Notes: generated from the letters alone by a model not told the origin. A stretch of 64,000 bases of DNA from Octopus bimaculoides (GCF_001194135.2 NC_068986.1:9417946-9481945), one strand, 5' to 3'; numbered from the stretch's first letter, positions 226-37,570 are shown. Translations and numbers: made by a program.

Positions 226-264
226 AAAGCAAACTACCACCACCACCACCACCAGTAACCGAGG
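226..264 (+). CDS. Microexon 1 (39 nt, phase 1/1), xSKLPPPPPPVTE
   Basis: The AG at 224-225 is the first AG after a long AG-free, pyrimidine-rich stretch. Donor is GG|GTAGGT at 265. Length is divisible by 3. An in-frame TAA at 195-197 rules out an upstream extension. TGCATG at 289-294. Confidence 0.7.
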
Positions 265-446
265 GTAGGTAGTAGTATACTGCTGCTATGCATGGTGTTT
301 TAATTAATTTGTATTCATTAAAGACCCCATTTATTATTATCCATATTCATTTGCTGCGTCATTAAAATTCTCCAAGACTTAATATTAAGAAACTATACTT
401 ATCCCAAATAGTAAGAAACCAAATTTCTTAATATTTCTGTTGAATA

Positions 447-660
447 AAGTGGCAAGCTAGCAGAATCATTAGCATGTTGGGCAAAATGCTTAGCGGCATT
501 TTGACCGTCTTTATGTTCCATGTTCAGATTCTACTGAGGTCGACTTTGCCTTTCATCCTTTCAGAGTCGATATAATAAGTACCAGTTGCGTACTGGGGTT
601 GATGTAATTGACTTACTCCTTCCCCTGAAATTACCTCTTTGTGTCAAGGCTTGAAACCAA
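447..660 (+). mobile_element. tRNA-derived SINE family A
   Basis: A/B-box-like head (tggcaagctagcagaat...gttcagattc) and body gtcgactttgcctttcatcctttc. Other copies at about 11415, 12205, 13362, 13590, 31005(-), 35880, 46330(-), 49320, 53460(-), 59700(-), 61125, 61372 and 61525(-). Confidence 0.85.
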
Positions 661-966
661 TATTTTTGTTGAGTAAAATTATTGTGGTTTATATCTATCA
701 CAGTTCCAATGAAAACTTCATTGTTTTTATTCTTGATCCTATTTAAACTTTTTGTCTCACTTGAAGGCAATATTCTTCATTGTAACGCTAGATGATCGAG
801 AGGGTTATATGCCAGCGAAGTTCATTTCTAATACGTAGCTAATATTTCTGATATCAATTTGTAACCCTGTCTGATGTTTCTGATATTTCCCCACCTTGAT
901 AAACAAACTAATGAATAATGAATTAAGGTCAAGTCAATTCACTTTCTCATTCGCACGTTGCGTCAG

Positions 967-978
967 AGCAGCTAACAA
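967..978 (+). CDS. Candidate microexon 2 (12 nt, phase 1/1), EQLT
   Basis: actttctcattcgcacgttgcgtCAG|agcagctaacaa|GTGAGT. Strong donor, TGC just upstream of the acceptor, frame-preserving. Confidence 0.5.
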
Positions 979-2899
979 GTGAGTTTTATACAAATTAACT
1001 AACCTAAAACAGCTGCCAATTTTTCTCTTTTTATAACTGCGTTCCTATGGTAACCAAAAGCAATTGAGCTTAAGGCTAAATCTTCATCTGTTCCTGAAAT
1101 ATGAAGTTCCTGTCCTTTTCCTTTATCCTTTTTCGTTCTGGATTCACTTTATTTAATCTAAGAATTTCCAGCACTATTCTGGTAGCATCCAAAGATTTAT
1201 AAATTTGAGTAATTGTCTTTTATCTTTGATTTAAGCAACATTTGTTTCCCAAGATATGCTTCTAACATGAAGAGATATTATTCCATGCATGCAACAGAGA
1301 AGTTTATACAAGATTTCTGTTGCCAAGGACATTTTTATTTGTAAAATTAGCTAATTACAAACAGCAAAGTGAACATTAACCTAATGTAATTGAATAGTAA
1401 ATTTCAATTAAGATTAAACCTTCAATGAGGAGAAATGACATCAATATAGTATTAATAATTCTGGTAAAGAAAGGTAGGGGAGATAAATGAGGGGAGATGT
1501 TATTAGATAATAATAACCTTGTCTTGTTGGTTGCTGATATCTTCAAATTTGTGTAGGATTAGGATTAAAAGAAAATGTGATTATCAGTTGATTGATACTT
1601 ATATAGATGTTGTTTAGTTACAACTCAAGCTCTGATGACATTTCAGCTTTGACCACCTCATCTTTTTTGTATGCTTTACTGTTTTAAGACTGTAAAATGT
1701 GAGTTAATGGAATTTGGTTGTCATTTCAAGCAGGTTGAATAGGGATTTAAATTGTGATCATCATCACCACCATCATTACATGTCTACTCACCCTGACTCC
1801 CCCCCCCTGTTTGCCTGGGTTAGATGTTCTTTTTCCAACCCACCTTATCCCCACTTGTGATTCCTCATCAACTCCTTCATAAGGTTTACTATTTTGAGCT
1901 CAGCCTTCACGACTTCTTCCCATGTTTTCCTTGGTTTCCTTTCAGAAGGAGCTTTTCTGCTCTCTCTTGTGAATTTAAAATATTTACTCATATTTATTTA
2001 CTATTTAAGAATTTACTTTAAAGCATTCTGTTTTTAGCTTCCTGGTTTCATTTCTTTTTCTTTATATTTTTGTCTCTTTCTATCTGTGTTTTTTTATTTT
2101 TTTTATTTACAACCACAGTTATAAAGTTGTATCCCTATTAGGTTGGTGAAGAAATTTCTGATCCGAGACTCTTTTAGCATCATGTCTTCATCTTTAGAAT
2201 ATTTGTAAACAGAACCAAACAACTTAGATAATTGTCAGGGAATTCGTTAATATAGAAAGGAGCCATTTTATTAGGTTCAGCTCCAGTTTTGAGATGCAAA
2301 TATTTTTATCTCTTCTTCTGGATGTTTATCTTAAGTGTTACGTGGTCTTTCTAACTTCTTCATTGATAAAAACTTTCTGAACAATAAGCAAAATGTCTAG
2401 AGTTTTTCATATCATAATGAAATTTGTATTTTAATTTAGAATCTTCTCTCTGCTGCAACGTATGTTATTCATGGAGGCTGTTAAGAATCTTAGATGAATG
2501 TAGTTTTGTGAATCTTGTTTGGCAGGCACCATTACTGATCAGGAATTTTTAAAGTGAAAGAAAGATGCTACTAAAGATTTCTAAATTTATACAATAATTT
2601 ACTTGAAAACAGAGAGGAAAGCTAATTATTTTGATGATTATTTAGTTGTTAACAAGCTAGTTACTGTAATAAGGAGTATAAATAGTTGCATAAAGAAATG
2701 GATGGTTTCTACTGTGTGGCAGCTTTGCAACTGGAAATAAGCAAGAAATAAAAATGATTGGGTCTAGTCATACAATGGAGGTGGTTGAGTTGAGATGCAG
2801 GAATGATTTGCGACTAAGTAATTATATTATGTGAGTTGATGCCTAAGATGTGTAAGAAAGCTCAAAGAGAAAGAAAACTGATGGCACATGTTGGACTCT

Positions 2900-3072
2900 T
2901 TAACCCTTTAGCATTTAAACTGGCCAGATCCAGCCTCTCACACCTACCCTGCAATGTCATTCTGAAGATAGACAATCACATCTTTGAAGTTTCAAAGCTA
3001 CAAGATAATGCAGAATTCACTTTAAACCATGTAAATAACTAAGCATTACATTTGGCAATGGTGAATGGTTAA
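2900..3072. mobile_element. TTAA-CCCTTT MITE remnant (related copy at about 7526-7740)
   Basis: Begins ttaaccctttagcatttaaactggcc and ends aatggttaa. Internal sequence is shared with 7526-7740. Confidence 0.6.
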
Positions 3073-4689
3073 AATCAGAATCTAAAGATCTCACTGAAAA
3101 TTCTGAATGGTTTCAATGGTGTTGCTTTTGTTGTTTTTGTTAGATGAACTTTCCTGAGAAGGAATTAGCAAGATCCCTGTCACTGGTACCCAATTTCTGG
3201 TACCCTGTAATTTCACAAACTGCCTCCATTTAGCAATGCACCACTTCCTCAGCAATGGCATTGGCAGGCTACTTATCAAGTTTTAAATTCTTGAAATTCT
3301 TTAAGAGTAAAATGTCATATATATGATAGACTATATTTCTGGGCTGAAAGATGGAAGCAATTCTTTTTATTAAAAGACTCCTTATTGAAGCCCCTTGTCA
3401 GGTTGTAGACTCTTTGCATTATTTTAAAGAAATGAAGTGCAAAGCTTTATTGATATCAATTGTGGTTAGATTATTATGATGGTAGATTTTGTATTGACTG
3501 CATCTAATTTATAGTAGGAAAATGTAAGGATTCAGCACAGTAGCTAGATACCATATGTGTAGTGAAACGTAGGATATTGAAAATAACTGATAATTGTTTT
3601 AAAGATTGTAGGAGTGGAATATTTGTTAAGCTTTAATATGGTTGTAATCTTATCTAGTTTTTATTGTCTTGAGTTGGTATAAATAGCCAATGATAGTAGT
3701 ATATTGATTTTGGTGGACTCGTTGATGATTAGATTTTATCTCCTCATCATTTTATGTCTGCCTTCCATGATGGTATAGGTTGGACAGTTGGACAAGATCC
3801 AATGGGTTAAGGGACCATGTTATGCTCTGGTGTCACAGTTGCATATTTGGTTGAGCCATGTAGTATGGGATTTTTCTAAATTTCTCTCATGTATTTTGCT
3901 AAGGAAGATGTGAGATTGTGTTGTTGGTGGAAAGTCTCCTTATTACAAGTAACTCTTATTCTGTCTTTGTGATTATTAGCATAGATTGCAGATCAAATGT
4001 TTTCGTGTCATTTGATGTTATCAAACAGTTTTAGTCAGTGGAAAATATATAGTAGGGCTTGTAATCTTTTGCCACTAAGTTGTGTTGATTGGAGAAATTA
4101 ATACAATATCATGGTCTCTGCTGTTGTATTTTCAAGCTATTTGTTAAGATCTCTACTGGACTGACCTCCTCATTGTGGAGTATTCTCATTTGAAGTATTC
4201 TGTACATAGATGAAGCCTAATGATTTCATTTCTTCTGTTAAGAATCTGTTGTGAGAGATTTCATTGCTGTATAAGCTCTTCTGAACTTGCAGGGTATGAA
4301 GTCCACCAATTATTGGTGCTAGACTTACCGTCTGCAACCCCTGAGCAAATGTTGCAACCAATCATCTGGTATAAACTTAGTGTTAACTAATTTAAGAAAC
4401 CTAAAAATCTAACTAGAAATTATTAGATACTGATTAATATTATTTCGAGACTTTTGGTAAAAATGGGAGATAACCATGGAGAAGTTTCTGTCACATTAGA
4501 TGTCCTCAGCCAAGCAGAGATTTCACTGTAATTAATGAAGTAATAAGGTAATCGTTTTGTAACTGCAAATATGCATTTGTTGCCAGAGAAAGATAGAAAT
4601 ATTCCCAGAATCAATTACTCTTTGATGCTGTCTGCATGCTCCTCTCCCTACTCTCAAACCCATTTCAACATACATCAACAAACCAAAAG

Positions 4690-5090
4690 CTTAGCAGCTG
4701 AGACAGTTTGGATATTTTGAAAGAGCACTGGTGGTCTGTTAGGGCCCAAGGCAAAGAATTGGCTTTGGACTTGTGCAGTTAGTGTTTTCTTTGGGCCTCA
4801 GCAATCCTGTTCTGTTCATAGGGGATCACACCTCTGCTAGGGCAGCTTCACCATGCTGGGTAGTTTTATGTTTGCATTTCGCAGGCGTCCGGGTTGATCT
4901 TAAAGCTCTTCAGTGAGGCCTTGAGTGTATCCTTGAAGCACTTTTTCTGTCCACTTTGCGTACACATGCCTTCTGCTAGTTTACTGAAAAACAGTCTCTT
5001 GGGGGTGTTGCATGTCAGGCATTCAAACAAGGTGACCTGCCACATATTCTATGATTAGAATCATGAGCAGAACTAAACTTTAGAAAGATG
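4690..5090 (-). mobile_element. RTE-clade LINE 3' fragment, degenerate
   Basis: The minus strand gives GHLV.MP..TPKRLFFSKLAEG....GQKKCFKDTLKASLKSF-like sequence. Boundaries are approximate. Confidence 0.7.
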
Positions 5091-5220
5091 ACTCTTCATC
5101 TATTGAAGAGTGGAAAGAAAAGAAATATCTAGTAGAGATAACTGAAAATAATATTTACTTGTAGAAGTATACTGCGAATAACATTTAAATCCTTTAAAAC
5201 TGTCTCTGGAAAAAATAGGT

Positions 5221-5422
5221 TTAACCCTTTTGTTACCAACCCGGCTGAAATCAGCTCTGGCTCTGAATACAAATGTCTTGTTTCCATAAGTTTTCAATTA
5301 AAATCTTCCTTAGTTACAATTTATGTTTCTAACACTAGCTGAATGATAACTAAATTCTTTGTTATATTTAAAGTAATTGAAAGAAACACAGAACATCTAA
5401 AATACAGTAACGAAAGGGTTAA
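5221..5422. mobile_element. piggyBac-type MITE
   Basis: TIRs ttaacccttttgttac and gtaacgaaagggttaa, with TTAA at both ends. Confidence 0.8.
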
Positions 5423-5575
5423 GAAAAAAATATAAACATGATATTTACCATGGCTTCCTACTTCTTAATGGATTGTTTTATAAATATTCCAAAATGAAAA
5501 GGAAAAATTGTATTTATGTAATCTACTTATTCATAATAATTTTGTTAATTTCATAAATTTTACCTCTCTTGGTAG

Positions 5576-5608
5576 AAGAGAAAATTGAAGCAGTTCAAAT
5601 CACTTCTG
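5576..5608 (+). CDS. Microexon 3 (33 nt, phase 1/1), xEKIEAVQITS
   Basis: tttacctctcttggTAG acceptor, TG|GTATGT donor, open in the same phase as the other microexons. Confidence 0.65.
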
Positions 5609-7863: not shown

Positions 7864-7893
7864 CAGAGGAGTGTCCTCTCCCTGATATTATTG
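7864..7893 (+). CDS. Microexon 4 (30 nt, or 27 nt via NAGNAG), AEECPLPDII
   Basis: Poly-T tract, TAGCAG acceptor, TG|GTATGT donor. Paralogous to the exon at 8201-8233. Confidence 0.8.
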
Positions 7894-8200
7894 GTATGTA
7901 TTTTAAGATTCCGGACTTTTTCTAATTTCAGTGATTAAAATTTCTTCCAAATTAGGTTTTTTTTTTTTGCTTGGGAGATTTTTTTTCTCAAAGTTAGATA
8001 CATTTCATTCAATGACCATTTCTTATAATTTAACATTTCGACAATATTTAATTGGTTTAAAAAATAATTATCCGTAAAATTAAATTGAATACTGAAAATT
8101 TTTCAGTTAAATAAACATCTTTAAACTTTTTATTAACAAAAAGAAATATGCAAAAAACTATCTCTGGATTTTTTTTACTTTCCTTTACCTTAACGAAAAG

Positions 8201-8233
8201 AAGAAGATGAACGTCCACTCCCTGATGTCATTG
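8201..8233 (+). CDS. Microexon 5 (33/30/27 nt), EEDERPLPDVI
   Basis: Pyrimidine tract, CCTTAAC branch-like motif, AAG AAG AAG tandem acceptors, TG|GTGCGT donor. Shares the PLPD[IV]I motif with exon 4. TGCATG at 8265-8270. Confidence 0.75.
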
Positions 8234-8738
8234 GTGCGTACTTTCACTCTCGGAAACTGCTTATTGCATGCAGTGTATTTTCATACTTATATTTTCCCTG
8301 TTTATCTCACTGTCTCAAATTGGAAGGTGTGGTTCTGTTTAGAGATTTCTTAGATTTTAGTCACTGAAAGACATATCCTTTTCTAGATAGGATGCCAGTC
8401 TATCAAAAGCTTTATCCACAAAAAACTATGGACTAATGAAATGGTGGTAAATCATAAAAATCTTCTGGCAAATATTATGAATTGTGTCTCTTAATTTATG
8501 CTCCTGTGTAAAGTGAGCAGCAGTATAAAAAGTAGCTTTACCAAAAATATAATGATGGAATTCACATTAAAAACTCAGTTTAACTGAAATTGCTATCAAT
8601 ATTAAAAGTTAACCTTTTTAATACCAATCCACTCAAGATCGCCCTTGGTTCTATAACAGCTTCCTGTTTTAAAATGATTGAAGTTAAAACTTCCCATAGA
8701 AATTTCATGTTATGTTCTAAGCACCAACTCCATAATGA

Positions 8739-9044: not shown

Positions 9045-9086
9045 ATTTTAGTAAATCCTTCATTATTTTCATAATTTATTGGAAAT

Positions 9087-10457: not shown

Positions 10458-10462
10458 ATATA

Positions 10463-10495
<33 letters not shown>

Positions 10496-11634
10496 TACAT
10501 CATCATCGTTTAGCGTCCGTTTTCCATGCTGGCATGGGTTGGACAGTTCAACCGAGGTCTGGGAAGCCAGAAGGCTGCACCAGGCCCCAATCTGATCTGG
10601 CAGTGCTTCTACAGCTGGATGCCCTTTCTAACGCCAACCACTCCGAGAGTGTAGTGGGTCCTTTTTACATGCCACCAGCACAGAGCTGGCATCGACCACA
10701 ATCGGATGATGCTTTTTATGTGCCACTGGTACGGAAGCCAGTCAAAGCAGCAATGTATATGATTCTTATAATCAGATGGTGTGGATATATACGTATGTAC
10801 ATATGTAGTTACGCATGTATGCTTGTAATACATATATCACCAGAGGATATGTATGTATCTTTGTGCATAAGAATATATGTCCAGATCTCTGTGCCGTGTA
10901 TATTATAGAATTTTGGAAGATTCTTTTTAAGGTGTTAGTCTTTATAGTTTGATAGAATGTACAGAATTGGTTAAATATTCAAGAAATAACCAATAAACAA
11001 AGAACATACAGTTCCAATATAAACCTAGAATCTCTACCATAACTATATTTTCTAGTTGCAAAACTGTCTTTCAGTTGACTATAAAGTTTGAAGTTAGATA
11101 AAATATTCAAGTTTTTTTTTTTTGCTTTTAACACAAATATTTTCTCAGTTTCTTAATTTAGTAGTTTTTTTTTTTTTGGTTTTGTGTGTGTTGCCCGATT
11201 TTTACATTTAATAATCTTATTTTTCCAATCTTTTACCCACTTAGATAATAGATTGTTAAAGAAAAATGATTGTTCTTCAATGCTTTTAAATGTCATAAAT
11301 ATCAGATTGTTTAATTCAGTTTTGTATTTAAGATTTATATATAGTTGTGTTCCTATTAACCAAAGTGACCATGTTCCCAGTAACCTGTGTGCCTGTATGT
11401 GTGTGTGTGTGTGTGTGTGTGGTAGAATGTGCAGAGCACCTTTGTGGCATTTCATTACAACTGTTTCCATTCTGAGTTCAAATCCTGCCCTTGACAACTT
11501 TGTGTTTCATCCTCCTATGTTGACAAAATAAATACCGAGTCAATGTTAAACCCTGAAAGGTAAAGCCCCAGAATGGTCACAGTCCAACGACTGAAACCAT
11601 TAAATGAATATATCAAAGTAGGGTTTATTATCAT

Positions 11635-13286: not shown

Positions 13287-13316
13287 AGGAAGAAATACAA
13301 ACTACTTATCGTAAGG
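13287..13316 (+). CDS. Microexon 6 (30 nt), EEEIQTTYRK
   Basis: tttatttttcgttCAG acceptor, AGG|GTAGGT donor, phase 1/1. Confidence 0.7.
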
Positions 13317-14420: not shown

Positions 14421-14450
14421 CTGAGAATTTGCCGCCTCCTAGTTTTATGG
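14421..14450 (+). CDS. Microexon 7 (30 nt), AENLPPPSFM
   Basis: Pyrimidine tract with AAG acceptor, GG|GTAGGT donor. The downstream intron (gtaggtatcagttgtctggtttgcatg) resembles those of exons 9 and 11. Confidence 0.8.
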
Positions 14451-15012
14451 GTAGGTATCAGTTGTCTGGTTTGCATGATGTTTCCTGGAGTTTTCCTGTA
14501 GTCATAGAAGAATTCCACTTACTAAAACTTCTAAAGTCATAATTTTAGTTATCTTGATATCTAGCTGTTGTATTGGTTCAATTTAATTCATTTAATTACC
14601 TTCCTTATAAAGACAATTAAATCTTGAAATGTGTTGTTAAGATATAGCAGAAGTATACTTTAAGAAAGTTATGTATTGTTATATCAGACATACTCTAAAC
14701 GAAAACCATTTTTTGGTTGGCGTCAAGGAGAAGAGTTTGCTGCAAATACTTCGGTCCTGTAATATTTGTTCCACTCACTTTAATTTCACATTACATCAAT
14801 GGTGATGATGATTGTTACTACATTTGAGATGGAACAACAATTTCATTATTAGCTGCAAACCTCATCAGTAAAAAAAAAACAAAAAAACAAAAAACAAAGA
14901 AAAATCACAACAAAAATATATATTAAAGAATAAGGGTTAATTCAGTCTGTTGGTCCTCTTGAATAAAATGGCTGTAATACTTAAATATTTCTTGAGCAAC
15001 TGTTTGCCCCAC

Positions 15013-16329: not shown

Positions 16330-16362
16330 TTGAAGAAGTGGTCAATGATGCTGACATTGAGG
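16330..16362 (+). CDS. Microexon 8 (33 nt), VEEVVNDADIE
   Basis: tttctgttcCAG acceptor, GG|GTAGGT donor. Paralogous to exons 10, 12 and 13. Confidence 0.85.
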
Positions 16363-16670: not shown

Positions 16671-17875
16671 TCGGGTCGTCCCATAAATAATGCAGTTTTT
16701 TCAATTGCATGAACTAAAAGTCGGAGGAGGACGGGTTAAACTACCTGCATCAACTTGCTATAAAAGCAAGTGGTAATTTTACCTTGCCCTTATTCTTAGT
16801 GCAAGTTTTGAAGAGTGCAGATTGATTTTAACAGTTATTTTTTTTCAAAGCCATAATGGAAGTGACAAAGCATATTTTGCTTTATGAGTTCAATAAAGGC
16901 AACAGAAGCTGTGAGGAATATTAATGCAGTATATGGAGATGGAACAATAAGCGTAAGCCAGTGTCAACAGTAGTTCCAGAAATTCTGAACCAGAAACTAC
17001 AGCCTTAGAAGATGATCTTCATTCTGGAAGATCTGTAAAGCTCGATGAGGACACCCTGGAAACCCTGGTGGAATAAGATCCCATCATAACTGTTGAGAAA
17101 CTAGCAGTGAAGCTTGAATTTGGTCATTCAACCATTCATTGCCACCTGGCGTACCATTGGAAAAGTCAGCAAATTGAGTCAATGGGTTCTTCACAAACTT
17201 TCCCAGTCTAATTGCACGCAGAGAGTGAATGAACCTTTTTTGGACCGATTAGTGATTGTTGACAAGAAATGGTTTCTCTATAAAAATGTCAAGTGCCAAA
17301 GACAGTGGGTAGGGAAAGGAGAAACTCCAGCACCCCAGACTAAAGAAGGTCTTCACCCACATAAGGTTTTGTTATCTGTTTGGTGGGATACAAAAGGTTT
17401 AGTCCACTTTGAACTTTTAAGCCTAAACCAAATGATACAGAGATCTACTGTGAGCAGTTAGAAAAATAAATGACCATCTTTGGTTTCAAGACGAAAGGTG
17501 TTCTTCCATTAAGATAATGCTCAGCCACACAGTGAGAATGACACTCCAAAGGCTGGAGCAGTTTGAATGGGAAACAATGCCCCACACACCCCATTTGCCA
17601 GACATTGCCCCCATTTGATTATTATTTATTCCACAATCACAAAATCGTTTGGACGGAAAAAGTATGAATTTTGTAGATGAGGTCAGAACAGTACTGGAGG
17701 AGTATATTTTGTCATGGACAAGTAAATTTTGGAAAAGGGGCCTTGCAAATCTACTAGATAGATGGAAGAGCATTGTAGAAAATGAAGGAGAGTATATTTT
17801 AGATTTTTAAAAATTTATCTTCATTTTGAAAAATAAAAGTACAAAAAAACCCACATTATTTATGGTATGACCCAA
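16671..17875 (+). mobile_element. Near full-length degenerate mariner (Tc1/mariner) DNA transposon
   Basis: Imperfect TIRs of about 30 bp (tcgggtcgtcccataaataatgc... / ...cattatttatggtatgacccaa), flanked by TA on both sides. Confidence 0.92.
16856..17810 (+). pseudogene. Mariner transposase pseudogene (stops and frameshifts)
   Basis: Recognisable LLYEFNKG, WVLHKL (WVPHEL-like), IVDKKW, KVLLSVWWD, DNA.PH, PDIAP and GLANLLDRW...ENEGEY. Confidence 0.9.
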
Positions 17876-19054: not shown

Positions 19055-19081
19055 AAGATTTACCACCTCCAGTTGGAGTGG
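19055..19081 (+). CDS. Microexon 9 (27 nt), EDLPPPVGV
   Basis: ttttgttttacattaaTAG acceptor, GG|GTAGGT donor. Identical to exon 11. Confidence 0.85.
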
Positions 19082-19609
19082 GTAGGTACCAACCTTCTGG
19101 TTGATTTGCATGCTGTTTTCACTTTATTCTCTTTTCAAGAGCTTTATATATAAAAATTCTTTGCAATTTAAATAGAAAATTCTTAATACTTTTGACAATC
19201 TTTGTAGCAATTCATAAATGGTTAATTTTGGATTTTTGTTTGAGGCATATTTTTTAGAAATTATTTCTGTTTGTAATATTTGCTACATGTGAGTTTACTT
19301 GCAAAATTGTGTTTGTGTGTGACTGCACATGCTTCAGCTTTCTTTCATACATCGTCTGGCACTCTTAGAAATATCCAACAACTTTGATAGATTCAGATAA
19401 ATTTGTTATGACTACAAAAAGATGGATTAAATTGACTTTTCTATCACATTAAAACGAATCACTGTTAAGAATGAATATCATATACCCCAGATATGACTAT
19501 CTGGTGACTACAGTGTGTTCCCTGTTAATACATACTCACTACAAATCTGCTCAATTTTAATTTTATTCAAATTCAAACTCACTTTGCCGTTTTAATAATT
19601 TACAGTATT

Positions 19610-23453: not shown

Positions 23454-23483
23454 TGGAAGAAGTCAGTGATATTGATGTTGATG
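23454..23483 (+). CDS. Microexon 10 (30 nt), VEEVSDIDVD
   Basis: tttctgttcCAG acceptor, TG|GTAGGT donor. Confidence 0.85.
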
Positions 23484-23989: not shown

Positions 23990-24016
23990 AAGATTTACCA
24001 CCTCCAGTTGGAGTGG
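23990..24016 (+). CDS. Microexon 11 (27 nt), EDLPPPVGV
   Basis: Identical to exon 9, including 10 nt upstream and 31 nt downstream. Confidence 0.85.
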
Positions 24017-24591
24017 GTAGGTACCAACCTTCTGGTTGATTTGCATGTTATTTCAACACTGCTCTCTCTCTCTCGTTTATTAAATTTGCAGAGGTTTCAT
24101 ATAGAGAAATTGATATTTAACATTTTTTTATGGAAAAGTTTTAGTACCTTCAAATATCTTTATAATTGTTCACAGCAATCACTGTTCATAAACAGTTCAT
24201 TTTGGGTAATATCTGTTTGTAGTATAAGTTATTAATATTCAAAATTAAATATTACTATTTGTTTCTGTTGAGTATGATGTCTGACTGGAGAAAAACCAAA
24301 AAAAGAGGCCCTATTAACTGTTTTCTATTGTAAATGTGACCATTGTGGTACAATCTTAAAGGATTCTTTCATTAGGATTATAGAACTTTGTCTTCAAAAA
24401 AGTTATAAAATGTAGAGAATCTCCCTTCATTTCTGTTGCATAAATGGATGAAATTATTGGGAATGATTGCCAAACATTTACTTTGTTCAAAAACTAATCT
24501 AGAAATATTTTTGTGGTTTGATACTAATCAGCTGTGTTCAGAAATTTGTTCATTTATCCATTTATTGACGCATCTCCTGTTTTTGTTCCAG

Positions 24592-24624
24592 TTGAAGAAG
24601 TGGTCAGTGATATTGATCCCGATG
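24592..24624 (+). CDS. Microexon 12 (33 nt), VEEVVSDIDPD
   Basis: tttttgttcCAG acceptor, TG|GTAGGT donor. Confidence 0.85.
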
Positions 24625-26480: not shown

Positions 26481-26513
26481 CTGAAGAAGTGATCAGCGAT
26501 GCTGATATCGATG
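26481..26513 (+). CDS. Microexon 13 (33 nt), AEEVISDADID
   Basis: tttctgttcCAG acceptor, TG|GTACGT donor. Confidence 0.85.
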
Positions 26514-26970: not shown

Positions 26971-29642
26971 ATATAAATAAACCTACATATTCAAATATAT
27001 ATAGTCCTAAACAATAATCTAAAATATTTTGTTATCCCCAGTTCGCAATGTTGCTGTTAAATTAGACATTAATTCTTGATTCATAAAAAAAATACCAATA
27101 TAGATGAGAAGTTAGACAAGATATGTAAGGTGATGTCAATGAATAAAGACAAAGGACAAGATATTATATCACTCTATGTTGAATGCTTCTTTTATATTTT
27201 GGGAAAGCATTTCTTTAGCAAATACAAGACAGAAAATAACCCAGTAGTTCATAGAAAAAGTGTAATTATTGGCACGTCATTCTGGTGTATTGTGATTCTT
27301 AAAGGAAACTATTCTGAGATATAACCAAAGCATTAAACAATCTACATAGGGTGATATATCATCTTGTCTTTATTTATTGACATCATTTTACATATTTTGT
27401 CCAATTTATCTGTATTGTTTAAAGGTTTTCTTAAATATACTTACATCAATTAATAATCTATGTAACTATTTTCTCATACTGAACTTTTGATAAATTTTTA
27501 TAGCAATAATAATACTTCAAATATATTTTCAATGAAAAGTATTGAAATTTCTTATATAGTTAGATATAATTCAAAGACAGTGAAATTTTGATGCCAAAAC
27601 AATAAATCAATAATATTTATCTTTATTAATTAACAACATTTTACAAAATTTATGTATTTATATATGCTTGTGGTTTTAAATATCATATAATTTAGTTACT
27701 TTTTTTTAGTTTAAATCTGGCTGGAGTTGATAAAAAAAATACCAGAAATATATCGATTGCTTGCATTAATATTGATAATTATTTTTTATAACTATCATAC
27801 ATTGCAATCACTTTTATCAGTTTTAATTTTTCTGAGAAAGCTTTTGACAATTTTTACATAGAATGCTGTTTGGTAATAATTTTTGTTGAACATTATATCA
27901 TGACGTAGTTTACAAGGATTGTTATAAATTCAAAAAAATGCAAAATAATCTAGTTTTATTTATTCAAATTGTAAATGTCTATTGACTCTTAACTTCCTGT
28001 AAGACCTAATAGCATTTGGAGACTATATCAGTCAACTACTCCTGAAACACAGGATGTCACAAGATTCATACTAACCTTGTTCACATTCATTTTGAAGGGA
28101 GTAAGGAACTCTCTAATGCAAGGGAGAAGACTCTACTCTCTTCCTCTGTTAATTTATTGTTCTGTAATGGCATTATTACAGGAATGGGGTTTTCAAGAGG
28201 ATGTTGTTTAGAGTTAAAATAATTAGTTTTACTGTAATTATCCTCTAATGCAGTGGTTCCCAACGTGGAGCCTGAGAAAATTGTGGCAGGGCATGGTGCT
28301 GTGGTCACCAGGCACAAGGTTCTCATTAAAGTGATTCGCTTTTTTTTTTCTTAGTCAATAATGTACATTTTTTTGTTTGTATTCAGTACTTAATAAAAGC
28401 GTTGATAGATTCTTTTGTAGTAAATAATTGATGTAAAATATCAAAAATAAAGTTGTTGTTTTTTTCCCAACGACTGGTGGGGGCATACATTTTCCTGGAA
28501 AGTTATAGTGGAGCCTGGGGGGAAAATAGGTTAGGAAATAGCTTCATCTTCAAGCCTTTCTTCTTAATCTTAATACTTCATAGTGTTGCAAAAGAGGTCT
28601 GCTTATCTGACTGGATGATGATCATCTGGTGTCTTATTTTAGAATTGGTTAAGAACCATGAAAAATCCTTGGAAGGGTAGACTTGTGTTGTTGGTTCCTA
28701 ATTAGTTAGTTTCCAGGACAATAGAGTGTAATCTCCAAAAAAAAAAAAATGGTTTTGTTAGGAATGCAAGAAAGAAGGAAAAACAGGAATGTACTGTTTT
28801 ACATTTCATGCAAACAATGTCCAAGTGGTGCACTTCACTGCATAATAATATGCAGTGAATAATTTCTTTAGATGTAGTGAAGTATTATTACTTAAATGGT
28901 AAACTTAGAATTTCAGCTGTGACTATGACCTGCAGAGGGAAAGTTTAGAGAAGTGTTATTCTTGTTGACATTTGGTTGAGATTTCTATAAATCTTATACT
29001 GTACAACAGTGGTAGTGAGTGGGCATAAAAAAACCTACAGCAGTTGCCTAACAGCAGCTTCTGCAAGGCCTGTTTTATTGGTGTCAACAGTTATTGGAGA
29101 GAGAATGGTGTATGGAGGGGGGAGTTGTTATCACTGGGGTCCGTTATGTTGAATCTGTTACTATTGTCATTACTATAGATTATATAAACTTGAAGCTATT
29201 TCTATACTGACACTCCAATATCAGTCTGGGTGTGTGTATGTTACATTTGGAAACAAAGTATAACAAGACTCTATCATTCTATCTACAAGAACAATTATTA
29301 GGAAGAAAATTTACCATTTTGGGTGTGTGAGCAGTGTTCATTCGGTGGGCCTGGAATATATATTCCTGATAACCATGTGACTGCCCTAATTAAGTTGCGC
29401 ATGCTAGGTGGAGGTGAATTGTTTCTGTTGCAAAGATAGATCACAAGAAAAGAAATCCGATATGGCAACTTTGGTGACCATCACAAGTGAGATGATAAAG
29501 GATGAAGAAGCATCGTAAGATGCAGTCTTGCTCACCAATACAACCCGTATCAGAATGGTAAAACTTGCCATAAAAAGGGAATAATGTTAACATTACAATT
29601 AAATTTTAATCTTATAATAAATTTCTAAATTCTAAGTTGTTT

Positions 29643-29679
<37 letters not shown>

Positions 29680-29760
29680 GCTCACAATAATTTGTGCTGT
29701 GTATAAAATAGCTGACACTTTTTATACATATATATATAGATATCTTTTTTTTCTTATCAG

Positions 29761-29790
29761 AAGACAAATTTTCGGCACCAATTATTGTTG
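29761..29790 (+). CDS. Microexon 14 (30 nt), EDKFSAPIIV
   Basis: tctttttttttcttatCAG acceptor, TG|GTAGGT donor, GCATG at 29815-29819. Confidence 0.75.
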
Positions 29791-31269
29791 GTAGGTATTG
29801 AGTTGAAGCTTCAAGCATGGTGTTCTCCTACTTAAAAAACTATTTTGTGTAGTTTTTTTTTTTTTGTAAACTGATTAATTTTGCAGCTGTTTCTTGTATG
29901 TCAAAGATTTTGGGCTTATCTATCAATCTTAGAAAACTTAAAATGGTTTTATCATAAGTTTAATTATGCATGCAAATATTTTTAATCACTTAAAATCTTG
30001 ATGACTTTAAAATTACATTTCATATTAATATTACAACAACAACAAAAAACAAACAAGTAGAACACACACACACACACTCACTGCTTTTTTTAAAAAAATG
30101 TAGTTAAGACTGTTCCACTAAGAATGTTTGTGAAGAATGTTTGTCTTATTCAACAGAATTGATGTTTCTGTGGGTTTGCAATAATAATACTTTTATTAAT
30201 TATAGTAATGATGTCATTATCGTTACTGTGCTGTCATATATAATTTTTTCTTTATCAATTTCTGATGTTTCGTGTTAGTTAACAGTGATCTGTTTTATCA
30301 ATGAAGTCTTTAATCATAAGTCTTTAATCAGCACCCATTTGTGACACTTGATTAACATCTTATTTTCCTTACTAACCCAGTCTTCAGAGAGCAACAGCTG
30401 CATATTTGCTTAAGTAAAAGTTGGTCTAAGTTTCACACTATTTATTTATGTCTGTTTTTTCATGCTAGCATGGGTTAGATGAATATAATATTGAAGCGTT
30501 GTTTAATAGGCCAAAAGAACTGACACCCTTTCATAACTCACAACTCACAGAGCCCAAATGTAAACACAAACCTACACATATATGATAGGCTTCTTTCAGT
30601 TTCCTTCTATCAAATCCTCTCACAAGACTTTGGTTGGCCTGGGGTTATCATAGAAGACTCTTGCCCAAGGTACCACACAGTGGAAATGAACCCTTTGTTG
30701 TTTAACCTTTTGCACAGTATCTCTCTAGTTTTTCACTAATTTTCTGCTATTTTTTACACTTTCTTGTCAATAGTATCAACATTCTGAGACTAAACGTTGA
30801 TCTGCCTTTTCTTTTGCTTTCATTGCACTGCAGTCACGTGTGAAAGGTTTTACTCAAACATATCAACAGCAGTACTCATTTCTAAATCTGGTGCTTAATA
30901 GTCTCTGTTTGTTGTACTGCTAAGTTACAGGACAAACAAAACCAGAATTTGTTTTTTACAAAGCAATGTCAACATGCAGATATATATTTCTTTATTGGCC
31001 ACAGGGGTCTAAACACAAAGGGGACAAACAAGGACAGACAAAGGGATTAAGTTGATTACATTGATCCCAGTGCGTAACTGGTACTCTATTTATTGACCCC
31101 AAAAGGATGAAAGGCAAAGTCGACCTTGGTGGAATTTGAACTCAGAATGTGTGTGTGTATGCCTCTCCCCTCCCAACTGCTGCAGCCCAACACTGCTCTC
31201 TTAATTCTCTCTCCCTCTCTCCTGTCCTCCCTCTGCTAACTGTATCATTACTGTCACTTCTTTTCTATC

Positions 31270-31668
31270 TTTATATACCTGGTGCCAGTGGCATGTAAAA
31301 AGCACCATCCGAAAGTGGCCGATGCCAGTATCCCCTGACTGGCTCCAGTGCCGGTGGCACATAAAAGGCACTATCCAAATGTGATTGATGCCAAGGCTGC
31401 CTGATTGGCTCCTGTGCCAGTGGCACGTAAAAAGCACCATCCGAGTGTGGTTGATGCCAGTGCCGCCTGACTGGCTCCCCATATCAGTGGACATAAAAAG
31501 CAACCACTACACTCTTGGAGTGGTTGGCATTAGGAAGGGCATCCAGCTGTAGAAACACTGCCAGATCAGATTGGAGCCTGGTGCAGCCGCTGGCTTTCCA
31601 GACCTCAGTCAAACCATCCAACCCATGCCATGATGGAAAACAAATGTTAAACGATGATGATGATGATT
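31270..31668 (+). mobile_element. Repeat family C copy with about 3.5 units of 66 bp
   Basis: Unit starts at 31282, 31348 and 31414, followed by the family C body and (GAT)n tail. Confidence 0.85.
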
Positions 31669-31817
31669 TCATCTCTTACTGCATTCCCCACACCCTTTTG
31701 TACCTACATGAGCTCCTTACTCACATACCCTGAGCAATCCTTTATATCTACATCCTTTTACCTTGAGAGCACATCCTGGCACATTGTCACCATTTCTCTC
31801 ACTGCCCCTTACTCTTC

Positions 31818-31854
<37 letters not shown>

Positions 31855-33594
31855 TGGGGTAACCATGTATATCTCCTCTAGAGCAAGAGACCTGTTTCTG
31901 TGCCCCTATCCTAAGCTCTCCTCACCTGGCACAAAGCCATTTCCTTTAATACCACTTTTCCCATCTCAGCTGAGGGATCTTTGTCTTGCAAGTTATGTGA
32001 TCACCTCACCAGTGCCAGTCCGCTCTGTAAAATGGTTGGCTTTAGAAAGGGCATCCGGCTGTAGAAACCCTGTCAAGGCAGACAGTGGAACTTGGTGCAG
32101 TTCTCTGGCTTACCAGCTCCTGTCATGTATTGGTCAGCCCAAGGCCATCATTGTAGACTCTTGTTAAAGATTCCATGCGATGGAAGTGGCCATGTCTGCA
32201 TCCAAACACATATTTTACTTATTTTATTTCAATTTTCTTTGTAAGTGGAAATGAATGTATGCTGTTACTCTTCTGTAGACGTTGGAAGAACTTCCCTTCT
32301 GCTATGTCCAGGGGGTCTGGGGTTGCTTCCAATTCCTGACCTCAATTTTGTGTTTTTTATTGCTTCTGTAGTAAAAAATGGATAAAGCAGCTGCTCCATA
32401 CAGTTTATACAAAAAAATTATCTTTAAAGAGTTTGTTTTACCAAACTGGTTTCTGTAACTGATGCCGTGTTTATTTTGCATGATGATAATTACAATTAAT
32501 TAGTTGTTAATGACTGGTATTTTTGTTTAGTTTGGGTTTAATGTTTTTGATCAATTTATATTTTGGCATTTACTGTCATTGTTTTTCATCAGTTTTCCTG
32601 CAAAAATATCTCTTATGACTCTGCAAAATATTTCATTCGTGTTTGTCCATTTGTCAATTGAAACCAAATTGTGGCATCTTTTGAAAGTCATTTTGGCATC
32701 TAAATAGGTCTGATGATGATGAGAATTTCTTTTTGGTGAAGCAGTTTGGAGAGAAGAGATATTGAGGCAGTCCTTCAGCTGTTTGCAATTGTAAGGGGAT
32801 TAAGCATCCTTGCTCTAAGATATTCCTTTTCTGATTTCAGATTTTTTTGTTCTTTTGTTGCACCATTCCTCTTCATTTAGAAACTGGATTCTTGGTATTA
32901 TAAACTCAAATTGCAGCTAAAATCAATTTACAAAAAGGAAAATTTAGAAATTATTTTCTGAAAGTAGTGTATGACATCTGTCACAGATGTTAGTGAATAT
33001 TTTCTCTCTAAAATTGCGTGGCAATTTTGATGGATAGAATTTCTTTAACAAAATTTTCATTAATACTTTTGTCACCATGTTTCTGTTGAAATGCACTGTC
33101 TTTGTTTCAATTAATTTTGAAAATAATGAAGAATTGAAATGACTTTGCCATTATTTAGCTGCTGTTTGAAAAATGAATTAGCATGAAATTTCTGTAGATT
33201 TTAATTTAGATCAAGTTTTGAACAGGAAGTTTTTTATCATAAAAACAGGGGCAGCACCATGCAGGTTGGTATCAAAAGAACTAAACTGTTAATTGAAATT
33301 CTAAATTAGTTTTCATAATTTAGTTTATCTTTTAAAATTCTTTTTGCTAGTATACCTTTTGGTACAAAATATAACACAGTACATTCTTCTATTTTACTCC
33401 AGTTTGACAACTTTGTGACCAATAGAACCAATTCAGTTTTGGTTTTGTCAATTCTTATTTAGTTTCACTGAATATTGGAACCTAAAGCTTAAACTTCAAT
33501 TTCTTTACAAATCTGATCTTTTTTTTTTTTTTTGAGGAGACCTATTGAGTCAAGTACATCAACATCAAAATGAAATGAAATCACAATCAAATGG

Positions 33595-34002
33595 AAATTG
33601 TAGTTGTGTTCCCTGTGCCAGTAGCACGTAAAAAGCACCATCCGAACGTGGTTGATGCCAGCCCCCTCGACCTGACTGGATTCTGTGCTGGTGGCATGTA
33701 AAAAGTACCATCCGAACATGGCCGATGCCCGCACCACCTTGACTGGCTTCTGAGCCGGTGGTACGTAAAAAGCATCATCCGATCATGGTTGATGCCAGCC
33801 CCCTCTGGCCCCTGTGCCGGTGGCACGTAAAAAGCACCTACTATACTTTCAGAGTGGTTGGCATTAGGAAGGGCATCCAGTTGTAGAAACACTGCCAGAT
33901 CAGACTGGAGTCTGGTACAGCCTCCTGGCTTGCCAGTCCCCAGTCGAACTGTCTAACCCATGCCAGCATGAAAAACAGACGTTAAATGATGATGATGATG
34001 AT
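33595..34002 (+). mobile_element. Repeat family C (SINE-like, (GAT)n tail) with an internal 62-70 bp minisatellite
   Basis: ggttggcattaggaagggcatccag...aacccatgccagcatg..gacgttaaatgatgatgatg. Other copies at about 10497(-), 21660, 31270, 32020, 41590, 46745, 49955(-), 52815(-) and 56025(-). Confidence 0.85.
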
Positions 34003-34170
34003 ATTATAGAACAATATTGTCCTGGTAGTTAATGTCTTTAATTAACCAAACCTGTAATTTAAATGGTTGTGCTAACAAGAAAAGTTATCCTTGTTTCGTA
34101 ATTCAAGAATATACAGATCAGACCTAAGAGTTAGGAACTTCTTCCTATCAGTAGTTGGCTTTGTGCTCCC

Positions 34171-34211
<41 letters not shown>

Positions 34212-36419
34212 GTATAATTATTATTATTATTAAACTCTTCTCACTCTTCATGGCAGAAGTAGAGACAAGGAGAGAGTAAATATAAAACTCAATGATGGAA
34301 TTAATTCTTTCTTGATTTAGAAATTTGTTTAAATTTATGAAAGACAAACATTTCGTTAGACAAGGCAACAGTCTTTCCAGATTAACTTTACCAGAAAGTC
34401 TGCTATATATTGCCAAACTCATTAAACCAAGGTAAATCGAAATATCAGCAGTGAGGTTTGTGGCTCTAAAGCTGACAACATAATACTTTAATCAACTCAG
34501 TCATTTTTAAATGAAAATGTTTCACATCAATCTCATACTTTTTATAAAGTTAATAACAATTTTCTGTTTTGGTGATTTTTTTTTATCCAACACTGGGATT
34601 TTCCATCAGCATAGCCATGGGAGTCTCAGAGATAGCAAGTATTTAGCTGTAGCAGATAGTGCCTGCCATGAACTAAGAAAAGTTGGGCTGGCACCATTAA
34701 TTTAGTCACTTGGGAAAAAATGAATTCTATGGAAGATGTTTTCCAATAAACATTTCTTAAGCCTGCTACCTCCGTAACATCTTGAAAAATGGCTGAGTAG
34801 ACACCAGTTAGTATTCCATCAAGATTCTGTTAAGAACCAAATTAATGTTTGGATACTGACAGGAACCTTTAGTAGGTATTGAGGGAAATATTGTTATGAA
34901 GGAAGGCTATCTCAAAGATTTTAAATTGGGAAAAAGGTGTTTGATATATTTCATTCTTGAAAGAATTAAATATTTTTGTTTCAGAAGAGACTAGCTGCAC
35001 TTCAGATGTTTCTGTTGGTAAAATGGAATAAATTTTTTGGAAAAATAGCATTTGACTTGCTGAAGTAAATTACTTCTTGACTTTAGTTTAAGGAGAAGAA
35101 CGGGTTTGTTTCTTTACTCATAATTGCCCAATTCTCAAAGATAGGGGTTCTCAACTGCAGCCCTCAAGCATTCTTCCAGCAGCCCTTGATGGTCTTCCCT
35201 CTATAAATAGATTTTTCTTTAACTGACTTGTGTTTTATTTTTCTTTGGTGTACCCCCCAAAATAATCCAGGTTTTGGATCTAGCCCAGATATTAAAAAGG
35301 TTGAGAACCACTACTCAAAGATGTACGGACCTTATAGGTATTTTTGTAAGGAAGAAATATTTGGAAACAGCAAAGGTTTTCATATGAATAGGAATGAAAA
35401 GAAAATTGCAAGGACCACACAGGTAAATATACCAGGTAATAATCTTGGTAAACATACCAGGAGCATCAGGTAAATATATCAAGTAGATACCTTCTCTCAC
35501 AGAATCTATATAACATGTTTATTTTTTTAATTGATTGCAATATACTTTTGTCAACTGAAATATTTTTGTGAGCGACTTTCAATGTCTGTCGCAGAGACTG
35601 GTTTTTATTACAAAGACAAAAATGTTAGTCATTCAAATGATAAAAGACTATATGGACTTGTTTCATATCAATCTCATTAAAATATTTCAAATACTTAATT
35701 ACAGACTAAATTATCTTGGATGTTGTTAACTCTTTAATTATATTAATTAATATTAGTCTGACAAAGAGATCTGTCTCTCTATTGATTTTAATTTCTTGTA
35801 ACATCATAAACTATGTAAATTGTAAGTCGTTAGAATATATAATTATTGCCTCCCCCTATTAATAAAATTATTGTTATTAAAGTAGAAAGCTAGCAGAATA
35901 GTTAGCATGTTGTACAAAATGTTTACCATCATTTTGTCCATCTTTACAATCTGAGCTCAAATTCCACCATGATTGACTTTGCCTTTCATCCTTTCAAAGT
36001 TGATGGAATAAATACCAATTGAGCTCTGGAATCAGTGTAATTGATTAACCCCTCCCCTAAACTTTCAGGCATTGTACTTATAGTAGAAAAAATTATTATT
36101 ATTGAGGTGAGCACCATAAGAATAGCAGTATCAACATCTCAGAAAACCTAGTTAAACGTCTGGTCATTTCACAGATGTTAAAGAAAACACCATGAATATC
36201 ACTCCACATTTCTCTTTAGTTAAAATTCTCACTTTTTTTTAGAAATGCTAAACAAATGGAGTAGGGGAAAACAGTAGAGCACTGGCCTAAATACCATGCA
36301 ACATTGAGTTTTCTTTTTTGAATTTAAATCTTAAAGAGGGTAGCTTTCTTTTATCCATTATGGTTTCATAAAGTAGCTGTTATTTATTATTTTTACCTTC
36401 ACCTATGTAATATATATAT

Positions 36420-36472
<53 letters not shown>

Positions 36473-37555
36473 NNNNNNNNNNNNNNNNNNNNNNNNNNNN
36501 NNNNNNNNNNNNNNNNNNNNNNNNNNNNNNNNNNNNNNNNNNNNNNNNNNNNNNNNNNNNNNNNNNNNNNNNNNNNNNNNNNNNNNNNNNNNNNNNNNNN
36601 NNNNNNNNNNNNNNNNNNNNNNNNNNNNNNNNNNNNNNNNNNNNNNNNNNNNNNNNNNNNNNNNNNNNNNNNNNNNNNNNNNNNNNNNNNNNNNNNNNNN
36701 NNNNNNNNNNNNNNNNNNNNNNNNNNNNNNNNNNNNNNNNNNNNNNNNNNNNNNNNNNNNNNNNNNNNNNNNNNNNNNNNNNNNNNNNNNNNNNNNNNNN
36801 NNNNNNNNNNNNNNNNNNNNNNNNNNNNNNNNNNNNNNNNNNNNNNNNNNNNNNNNNNNNNNNNNNNNNNNNNNNNNNNNNNNNNNNNNNNNNTTTATAT
36901 TGAAAGAATAATAATTTTTAAAAGCAAGTCAGTGATATTAATGAAAACTAATCAGTGAAAATTCTTGTTTTCTTTCTTTAATTTATGTAAAAATCTTTGC
37001 AAGATGTATTTATAATGAAAATATAAAATTCTTTTATGTATTTTTCTTTTTTATCATTGAACGATGCCATTGTTGTTGTTGATGTTTAGCTTCAGGTTGT
37101 CCTAATCAAGTTGACAATCAAAAGCATCCTATCTTTTTCCTAGGTACACTGAATCCAGGAGACCACCTTATCCAACATGTCCCTTTTTTTTTTTCCCTTC
37201 CTCTAAGATGTTAGGGCATGGTATTTAACAATTATTTCTAGCCACCTGAACTACCACAGAGAGGTTTTTTCAGTGGGCTGGCTATTGAAAAACATTTCCT
37301 TGTTGATGTTGTCTTTGACTATCTCTGATCAGTGCTAATTTAAAACTGTTAATATTAGCAAAAAGGATGATAGAAAAAATGAAGTGGTTGGTCAATAAGA
37401 GTTTATCTTTGAAACCTTAACTTTTTTCAATTGAAGTCTGTGTATGTTTGTATGTATATGTATCTATGTATATATCTATATAAATAAAATACGAATATTT
37501 GTGGTGCGTCTGTTGAGCTAACATTCACACTCTTTATTCTCTACTTACCATGCAG

Positions 37556-37570
37556 GAATGACTGCAGACG
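37556..37570 (+). CDS. Microexon 15 (15 nt), GMTAD
   Basis: GCTAAC branch-like site, pyrimidine tract, tgCAG acceptor, CG|GTGAGT donor, TGCATG at 37587-37592. Joins in frame to the exon at 43536. Confidence 0.75.

Follow-up and report, generated by a model that had tools for sequence, protein, structure and literature searches.

The question raised by a 64,000-nucleotide (nt) stretch of Octopus bimaculoides DNA (GCF_001194135.2 NC_068986.1:9417946-9481945; hereafter the window, coordinates being counted from its first letter) is whether a series of very short exon-like segments, spread over positions 226 to 37,570, is real and, if so, what it contributes to the protein encoded at this locus. 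The original prediction considered these segments to be a hidden array of about 15 microexons, possibly forming a combinatorial code at the N-terminus of a nucleosidase-family protein. As the main outcome of the work described here, 14 of the segments were identified as exons of the gene LOC106873546, in which they constitute a real and conserved array of cassette microexons, and it is considered probable that this array is located in the linker between two domains, encodes a disordered segment, is regulated, tunes the linker and has grown by duplication.

The window is AT-rich eukaryotic DNA and contains six N gaps. A protein search with the exons downstream of the array returned isoforms of O. 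bimaculoides LOC106873546 as top matches within a family of invertebrate proteins of 560-610 amino acids, and the last coding exon was found to be 100% identical to XP_014776443.1 (isoform X6; P0001). When spliced, the window exons reproduce the RefSeq isoforms X5-X11 in every residue, hence the window belongs to LOC106873546, whereby the exons for a conserved N-terminal domain of about 170 amino acids lie upstream of the window and outside it. The gene is uncharacterised but widely conserved among invertebrates; no paper on this gene, on Pfam HTH_69 or on the array was found in the literature, and the text of a preprint tissue-splicing survey which includes O. bimaculoides does not mention LOC106873546. 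All six N runs are intronic and none touches an exon. As the RefSeq models derive from the same assembly, they provide no test of continuity across these gaps; the exon order over them was confirmed by the O. vulgaris protein P0121 (723 amino acids), which comes from a different, chromosome-scale assembly, and by locus L001 of Argonauta hians, which has no gaps. In neither relative was an additional exon seen that would fall into a gap, although one hidden there is not strictly excluded.

All 16 peptides of the original prediction were found in their places on the plus strand, to which the exons and motifs described below belong. Fourteen of its 15 microexon calls proved real with exact boundaries, while the 12-nt call EQLT (967-978) found no support. 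The accepted exons, here termed e3 to e16, begin with e3 (226-264, 39 nt, ESKLPPPPPPVTE), a phase 1/1 exon with a G|GTAGGT donor and an acceptor following a (CCA)n run, the Argonauta counterpart of which is EAESELPPPPPPEPE at L001 40165-40209. It is followed by e4 (5576-5608, 33 nt, EEKIEAVQITS; Argonauta EEKIETVTQITI, with the similar EEKLEATINV occurring in transcripts of a more distant cephalopod), e5 (7864-7893, 30 nt, AEECPLPDII; Argonauta EEECCLPDVV), e6 (8201-8233, 33 nt, EEDERPLPDVI, donor GTGCGT; Argonauta VEEDEYPLPDVV), e7 (13287-13316, 30 nt, EEEIQTTYRK; Argonauta EEEIQTTYHK, the block with its flanks being 93% identical) and e8 (14421-14450, 30 nt, AENLPPPSFM; Argonauta AEESVPLQTYV), all of which are present in P0121, e5 and e6 in a short form. 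The central part of the array comprises e9 (16330-16362, 33 nt, VEEVVNDADIE; Argonauta VEEVGSDSDID), which belongs to the acidic VEEV class and is variable among X5-X10, two copies of EDLPPPVGV, namely copy a in e10 (19055-19081, 27 nt) and copy b in e12 (23990-24016, 27 nt, identical to the Argonauta EDLPPPVGV exon at 27/27 nt), and between them e11 (23454-23483, 30 nt, VEEVSDIDVD; Argonauta VEEVINDIDVD), which is used in X5 and X7 and skipped in X6, X8-X10 and P0121. The remaining exons are e13 (24592-24624, 33 nt, VEEVVSDIDPD; Argonauta VEEVVSDIEAD), e14 (26481-26513, 33 nt, AEEVISDADID, donor GTACGT; 33/33 nt identical in Argonauta), e15 (29761-29790, 30 nt, EDKFSAPIIV; 30/30 nt identical in Argonauta, within a 172-nt block of 85% identity) and e16 (37556-37570, 15 nt, GMTAD, acceptor ...ccaUGCAG, donor GTGAGT; Argonauta GMTAD with the same acceptor, and GLTAD in transcripts of the more distant cephalopod).

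The exon features that had been proposed hold for this set. Each of the 14 exons (15-39 nt, separated by introns of 0.3-7.8 kb) is divisible by three, has phase 1/1 and leads in frame into the exon at 43536; each is preceded by an AG acceptor, with a pyrimidine tract in 13 of the 14 (the exception being the exon at 226, after the (CCA)n run), and the donor is GTAGGT in 9/14, all 14 exons ending in G|GT. As a consequence of length, phase and terminal G, any subset of the exons remains in frame and the junction codon is fixed by the downstream exon alone. Tandem AG acceptors occur at 7864/7867, where a 27-nt form encodes EECPLPDII, and at 8201/8204 (EDERPLPDVI); O. vulgaris uses the forms shorter by 3 nt, so some transcripts may carry EEC and EDE in place of the predicted AEEC and EEDE.

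Could such a series arise by neutral exonisation, splicing noise or chance matches to a splice pattern? A loose pattern scan (acceptor, open segment of 3n length and donor) gave 25 matches on the plus strand, at the 14 real donors and one other, versus 4 on the minus strand, a strict scan gave 12 versus 0, and GGTAGGT was counted 11 times on the plus and once on the minus strand; with this strand asymmetry, the array is not due to chance. Two matches do fit such an origin. EQLT (967-978) looks like a chance pattern match, as it is found in no isoform and is absent from P0121, the AG and GT are missing at the orthologous Argonauta sequence, and it ends in A, whereas all other exons as well as the upstream constitutive exon end in G; the match at 29290-29322 (EQLLGRKFTIL, donor GTGTGT) is likewise without an Argonauta counterpart and in no isoform. 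For the 14 accepted exons, an explanation by noise is already contradicted and is regarded as having next to no probability, since they occur in annotations or loci of three species and since their peptide and nucleotide conservation between two octopod families equals that of constitutive exons, while the introns cannot be aligned.

The conservation just mentioned was derived from a comparison with Argonauta, in which L001 holds one-to-one, collinear counterparts of all 14 window exons and of two further exons upstream of the window, 16 in total. Mean nucleotide identity between the Octopus and Argonauta exons is 81%, three exons being 100% identical, as compared to 84-90% for the constitutive exons; the flanking 50 nt are 60-68% identical, and identity drops to about 39% at 51-150 nt. 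When the 43.5-kb array region was compared by blastn to the Argonauta array, the conserved blocks corresponded to microexons (12/14), one dispersed repeat and two short non-exonic blocks, the blocks being centred on exons, and within the window no further exon overlooked by the original prediction was found by this comparison. Among the conserved non-coding sequences, a stretch at about 985-1035 (L001 40737-40778; TTTAACTAA..TAAAACAGCTGC) lies in the intron directly downstream of the rejected EQLT match, which itself is not conserved. A block at 36918-36979 (L001 62560-62621, 79% identical) was tried as an exon and rejected, as every frame is interrupted by stops and splice sites are lacking; its position is some 580 nt before the GMTAD exon, it contains ...AATGAAAACTAATC... 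and its role may be that of a regulatory element or a distal branch point.

Where the array resides within the protein is revealed by P0121, in which the N-terminal domain, 15 microexons and the winged helix follow each other in one continuous open reading frame and in the same order as in the window. Its array part reads ...QLDQSEAPLSP-EVKVETTVMR-DHEIPQTIVY-ESKLPPPPPPVTE-EEKIEAVQITS-EECPLPDII-EDERPLPDVI-EEEIQTTYRK-AENLPPPSFM and continues with VEEVVNDADIE-EDLPPPVGV-EDLPPPVGV-VEEVVSDIDPD-AEEVISDTEID-EDKFSAPIIV-GMTAD-GLPKID.... The array is hence internal, between the conserved N-terminal domain of about 170 amino acids and the winged helix, and not N-terminal as had been proposed. The suggestion that it continues upstream of the window was borne out, given that P0121 and Argonauta both contain two more microexons, EVKVETTVMR and DHEIPQTIVY; together with the 14 exons of the window these sit in the intron between the exon which ends the N-terminal domain (...APLSP|G) and the winged-helix exon at 43536.

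The annotation of O. bimaculoides already contains the exons in 11 automatically predicted isoforms (X1-X11), so that the array cannot be called hidden. The proposed cassette nature of the exons is supported at the level of these models, as the isoforms differ in exon use and were rebuilt exactly from the window. X1-X4 omit the whole region 226-29790 and differ from each other in the upstream EVKVETTVMR exon and in GMTAD (X1-X3 versus X4), whereas X5-X10 carry e8-e16, with variation confined to e9, e10/e12 and e11 (six combinations). The start of X5-X10 is annotated at the ATG 14447-14449 inside e8, and that of X11 at 37558 inside e16. The pattern is thus that of a whole block which is included or omitted, combined with local variation, rather than that of a free choice at 15 sites.

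Two rival explanations have to be weighed against these models. According to the first, about 15 exons would each be included independently and form an N-terminal combinatorial code with up to 2^15 variants. All exons being symmetric with phase 1/1, every subset would indeed be in frame, three exon positions appear nearly free in the six combinations of X5-X10, and the O. vulgaris ortholog carries the transferred name 'LOC115212809 isoform X43'. Against it stand the internal position of the array in P0121, the fact that short forms omit the block while long forms keep e13-e16 constant, which suggests coordinated inclusion, and the number of models, 11 and at least 43, which is far below 32,768; 2^15 independent combinations are therefore unsupported, the models describing long-block versus short forms with local variation at three to four exons, and free combination is judged very unlikely. 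The second rival assumes an internal promoter, so that the array would be found mainly in truncated proteins which lack the N-terminal domain and start inside the array, at 14447 (X5-X10) or 37558 (X11). X5-X11 translate exactly from ATGs within e8 and e16, and no O. bimaculoides model links the N-terminal domain to e3-e15, as such a promoter would have it; P0121, by contrast, is a single reading frame across N-terminal domain, array and winged helix, frame and peptide of the exons before 14447 (e3-e7 and, beyond the window, e1-e2) are preserved in Argonauta, which is unexpected for a 5' untranslated region, and the internal starts may simply reflect models that are incomplete at their 5' end on a gapped assembly. 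An internal promoter is hence considered unlikely; the conserved frame and peptides of e1-e7 in Argonauta and the continuous O. vulgaris reading frame favour the reading of the array as a linker.

What kind of protein carries this linker was identified by profile and fold searches. The winged helix is encoded by the constitutive exons 43536-43644 (part 1, Pfam HTH_69, GLPKIDNRPKDEILREKMLHILESAYPNILAVEDICR), which takes phase 1 from any upstream exon, and 47519-47637 (part 2); these are followed by 49636-49779, with the start of the nucleosidase-like (PNP_UDP_1) domain, 55487-55612, also part of this domain, and 62421-63166, the last coding exon with the stop codon, which contributes the RGISDY motif and is 100% identical to P0001, all of these 3' exons having been used in the reconstruction of the isoforms. 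HTH_69 matches P0130 with 36.1 bits (cut-off 27) and the window exon alone with 23 bits, while PNP_UDP_1 is borderline (25.5 and 22.9 bits, cut-off 25.1). A search of the Protein Data Bank with the sequence of the full-length protein gave nothing useful and a fold search was needed; Foldseek placed the C-terminal domain with structures of MTA/SAH nucleosidase (MTAN) at E 3e-12 and a target TM of 0.76. An Asp which is invariant in the family (RGI[SA]DY) aligns with the catalytic Asp of the MTAN motif RAISD, the profile match being weak (E 0.03). The earlier assignment of the host as a winged-helix protein with a nucleosidase fold was thus supported by Pfam and Foldseek. Its N-terminus MADTQEDIVMTPTKKGE has no hydrophobic leader, and apart from the microexon-encoded part, about 160 of the 723 residues, the protein consists of folded domains.

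The insert itself differs from these folded parts. The short isoform was modelled confidently by AlphaFold2 (confidence score pLDDT 82.7), with values below 50 confined to residues 1-8 and 165-183, the latter being the insertion site of the array and the sole internal low-confidence stretch of the model. The full insert of 161 amino acids contains 30% D/E, 14% P and 14% V, has a net charge of -40 and falls on the disordered side of the Uversky charge-hydropathy boundary, from which we infer an intrinsically disordered, strongly acidic segment rich in P, E, V and D with repeated LPPP-type and EEVxSDxDxD motifs. In other DNA-binding proteins, competition with DNA by acidic disordered tails is well established, and a variant of the linker reading would have the acidic insert (net about -40) mimic nucleic acid and autoinhibit the adjacent winged helix, with splicing setting the strength of inhibition. 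The insert lies directly N-terminal to the winged helix, 30% of it is D/E and the linker is flexible in the structure model, as this variant would require; yet it presupposes nucleic-acid binding by the winged helix and leaves the conserved LPPP and PLPD motifs unexplained, so that only a small chance is given to autoinhibition.

That inclusion of the exons is regulated was suggested by their downstream introns. Seven of the 14 exons are followed, at a distance of 13-33 nt, by GCAUG, the Rbfox core motif, in six cases as UGCAUG. The motifs are located at 290-294, within UGCAUG and 26 nt downstream of e3 (+13 in Argonauta), a putative Rbfox-type intronic splicing enhancer, at 8266-8270 (33 nt downstream of e6; Argonauta +33), 14473-14477 (23 nt downstream of e8; Argonauta +23), 19108-19112 (27 nt downstream of e10), 24043-24047 (27 nt downstream of e12; Argonauta +24), 29815-29819 (25 nt downstream of e15; Argonauta +25) and 37588-37592 (18 nt downstream of e16; Argonauta +16). 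Exons without the motif are e4, e5, e7, e9, e11, e13 and e14, which include the acidic exons of the VEEV type. In Argonauta, GCAUG is found at +13 to +33 in 9/17 exons, and six orthologous exons retain it, three of them at an unchanged offset and three with a shift due to indels. With 68 GCATG in 64 kb, the binomial P for this placement is 4e-8, and an unbiased scan identified GCATG as the top downstream 5-mer (16/31 exons versus 5.1% of background windows, P 3e-13) and TGCATG as the top 6-mer, counts which are not independent, since the exons are paralogs and orthologs of each other. The retention of GCAUG in sequence which is otherwise about 60% identical argues for selection. The GCAUG pattern at the array is newly described here, whereas the exons themselves are already in public annotation. 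Downstream of e3, e8, e15 and several Argonauta exons the motif is often extended to GCAUGGUGUU(U/C), and this GU-rich tail might reflect binding of a second factor or common ancestry of the exon units. UGC beside the acceptor is present only at GMTAD (ccaUGCAG), in both species, and absent at the other 13 exons.

With regard to the origin of the array, the original prediction was not aware of a description of its architecture for the family; this architecture is not new, as one or two short inserts at the same junction, APxSP|G(L/F)xKED, distinguish isoforms, annotated or assembled, in many molluscs. Among 48 homologs, compared over the segment from FIKKCMKQM to LESAYP, such inserts were seen in oysters, mussels, scallops, abalone, sea hares, whelks and a chiton; Saccostrea has GSGISPEMLMM and GSNVDDYF, and RNA-derived contigs of the more distant cephalopod contain EYIIEPTV, EEKLEATINV and GLTAD. 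The alternative linker at the APxSP junction is hence old, but one to three inserts are found in the other molluscs and the more distant cephalopod, as compared to about 16-17 in octopods, and among the sequences examined the LPPP and VEEV exon classes occur only in Octopus and Argonauta. A word-indexed protein search with the microexon peptides returned no match although exact matches (P0001, P0121-P0126) are in the collection, while local phmmer with the same query recovered P0001 (6e-49) and P0121 (9e-81), so that null results of the word index for low-complexity queries carry no meaning. In an alignment made with MAFFT, the microexon part of P0001 was wrongly placed against the N-terminal domain of the homologous proteins.

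The four VEEV-type exons (e9, e11, e13, e14) share common acceptor TTTCTGTTCCAG and donor GGTAGGTAAC flanks, and the LPPP-type exons likewise have acceptor and donor flanks in common, which points to tandem exon duplication. The exons e10 and e12 are identical and their flanks nearly so over about 45 nt in both directions, with identity falling to about 55-60% beyond 200 nt. Since e10 is closer to the second Argonauta copy (94.5% versus Argonauta e12) than to its positional ortholog (82.8%), this comparison suggests gene conversion between the EDLPPPVGV exons in the Octopus lineage. A separate observation concerns Argonauta alone, where L001 47835-48044 is a long exon-like open reading frame of seven tandem 30-nt units (R)DLPPPVEE(G/V), whose acceptor is that of the EDLPPPVGV exons, whose donor is GTAGGT and which is followed by GCAUG at +23; the sequence GAG G|GTAG AGAT at each unit boundary looks like the result of joining 27-nt exons, nothing but GTAG remaining between them, and the internal GGTAG(G/A) sites could be alternative donors. 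No Octopus counterpart of it was found between 14450 and 16330.

Taken as a linker array, the microexons add, when all are included, up to about 160 residues between the two halves of the protein, and thereby would set the length, the charge (to about -40) and the short-linear-motif valency (the number of LPPP units) of the spacer. Inclusion would be actively regulated, whereby (U)GCAUG in the downstream intron of the LPPP-type, EEDERPLPDVI, EDKFSAPIIV and GMTAD exons is a putative Rbfox inclusion enhancer, and the VEEV-type acidic exons, which lack GCAUG, would be controlled by other means. As GCAUG in this position is where Rbfox proteins enhance inclusion, long isoforms are predicted to be enriched in neural tissue, muscle or both. 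In the octopod lineage, the array presumably grew by tandem exon duplication from the one or two alternative inserts found at the same junction of other molluscs. Several points weigh against this reading. The GCAUG counts are inflated by the kinship of the exons; the isoforms are automated models, so that the connectivity of distant exons may be partly inferred; the annotated O. bimaculoides models do not join the N-terminal domain to the exons at 226-29790, X5-X10 starting inside the array, and continuity in this species is deduced from the O. vulgaris protein and the conserved frame; and when LPPP, PLPD and EEVxSDxD were compared to known ligand motifs (EVH1, SH3, WW, SIM, LIR, CK2), none fitted adequately. 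A bolder version holds that octopods expanded an ancient linker of one to two exons to 16-17 exons of two regulatory classes, Rbfox-motif and motif-free, whose cell-type-specific splicing yields dozens to hundreds of variants and hence a graded, multivalent LPPP/acidic module diversifying one enzyme in neural and muscle cells, and this version is judged quite unlikely.

Several known systems resemble the array in part, the first two of them in the principle on which it would work. Fast skeletal troponin T reportedly has about five tiny in-frame cassettes, its 5' mini-exons, which encode an acidic N-terminal variable segment in many combinations. In both cases adjacent tiny in-frame cassette exons encode an acidic variable segment on a conserved core, but the octopus array has about three times as many exons, is internal and belongs to a winged-helix and nucleosidase-like host, whereas that of troponin T is at the true N-terminus of a muscle protein. 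The PEVK region of titin is made from tandemly duplicated short symmetric exons which encode a disordered spacer rich in P, E and V, with basic and acidic units of about 28 amino acids, and acts as a mechanical spring; duplicated short symmetric exons, a P/E/V-rich disordered spacer and a length set by splicing are common to both, while the mechanical role belongs to titin and none is implied for the octopus protein.

Closest with regard to control are the alternative micro-exons (<=51 nt) of vertebrate brain, heart and muscle, for which TGCATG was found to be enriched downstream and RBFOX binding there to enhance inclusion (Li et al. 2015, PMC4317164); symmetry, conservation of the flanks and location in disordered regions are further features of those associated with RBFOX (PMC4317164). 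All 14 octopus exons (15-39 nt) are within this length and multiples of three, and alternative inclusion, as derived from the octopus models, conserved flanks, downstream (U)GCAUG, a disordered region and strong splice sites are shared as well. Vertebrate genes, by contrast, usually contain one such exon each, as compared to 16-17 in a single intron of the octopod gene, of which half have the motif, and the role of Rbfox is putative here. The array fits the SRRM3/4 (eMIC) class of neural microexons poorly, as only three of the 14 exons (GMTAD with 15 nt and the two EDLPPPVGV exons with 27 nt) fall within 3-27 nt, the rest being 30-39 nt long. The UGC next to the GMTAD acceptor, mentioned above, is a feature of this class. 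The micro-exon genes of Schistosoma contain symmetric exons, 3-81 bp in size, with long introns in between, vary by exon skipping and encode secreted, schistosome-specific proteins built mostly of micro-exons (bioRxiv 10.1101/2023.06.21.545858). The octopus exons are within this size range, symmetric, separated by long introns and a source of protein variation by skipping, but of the 720-740 residues they encode about 160, and the protein is conserved, composed of several domains, without signal peptide and apparently intracellular; being neither secreted nor mostly made of micro-exons, it is not a micro-exon gene of the schistosome type.

The array reveals no new kind of mechanism; its exons are already public and its splicing is of a known kind. 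Its value lies in providing a clean and checkable case of how a short alternative linker can become, by tandem duplication of a symmetric microexon, a long spacer that is disordered and tunable, and a cephalopod locus suited to testing the downstream-GCAUG rule of Rbfox-type control on many exons together. Furthermore, it points to an uncharacterised and widely conserved invertebrate protein, composed of the N-terminal domain, a winged helix and an MTAN-like nucleosidase domain, the linker of which is a recurrent target of alternative splicing.

Outside the window, close to the N-terminus of the protein, a second small alternative segment was observed in both Octopus species, where MADTQE-GSN(V/F)DY-IVMTP alternates with MADTQE-D-IVMTP (P0130 versus P0131, P0003 versus P0002, P0007), and GTNSDY occurs in the more distant cephalopod. 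Scans of the window for tRNA genes and Rfam families gave no matches. The intron between e9 and e10 contains a degenerate remnant of a mariner-type transposase at 17111-17458 on the plus strand (Pfam Transposase_1, E 4.7e-17), which can be followed through broken frames as far as about 17807. A repeat about 200 bp long, resembling a short interspersed element, is dispersed on both strands at 10458-10700 and at least 12 more places (e.g., 31494-31662, 33812-34008, 49953-50109 and 52810-52995); its longer copies are 71-88% identical, it also matches several Argonauta introns, and it explains the pseudo-peptides ...GIRKGIQL... and ...NPCQHGKQ..DDDDD which recur in the six-frame translation.

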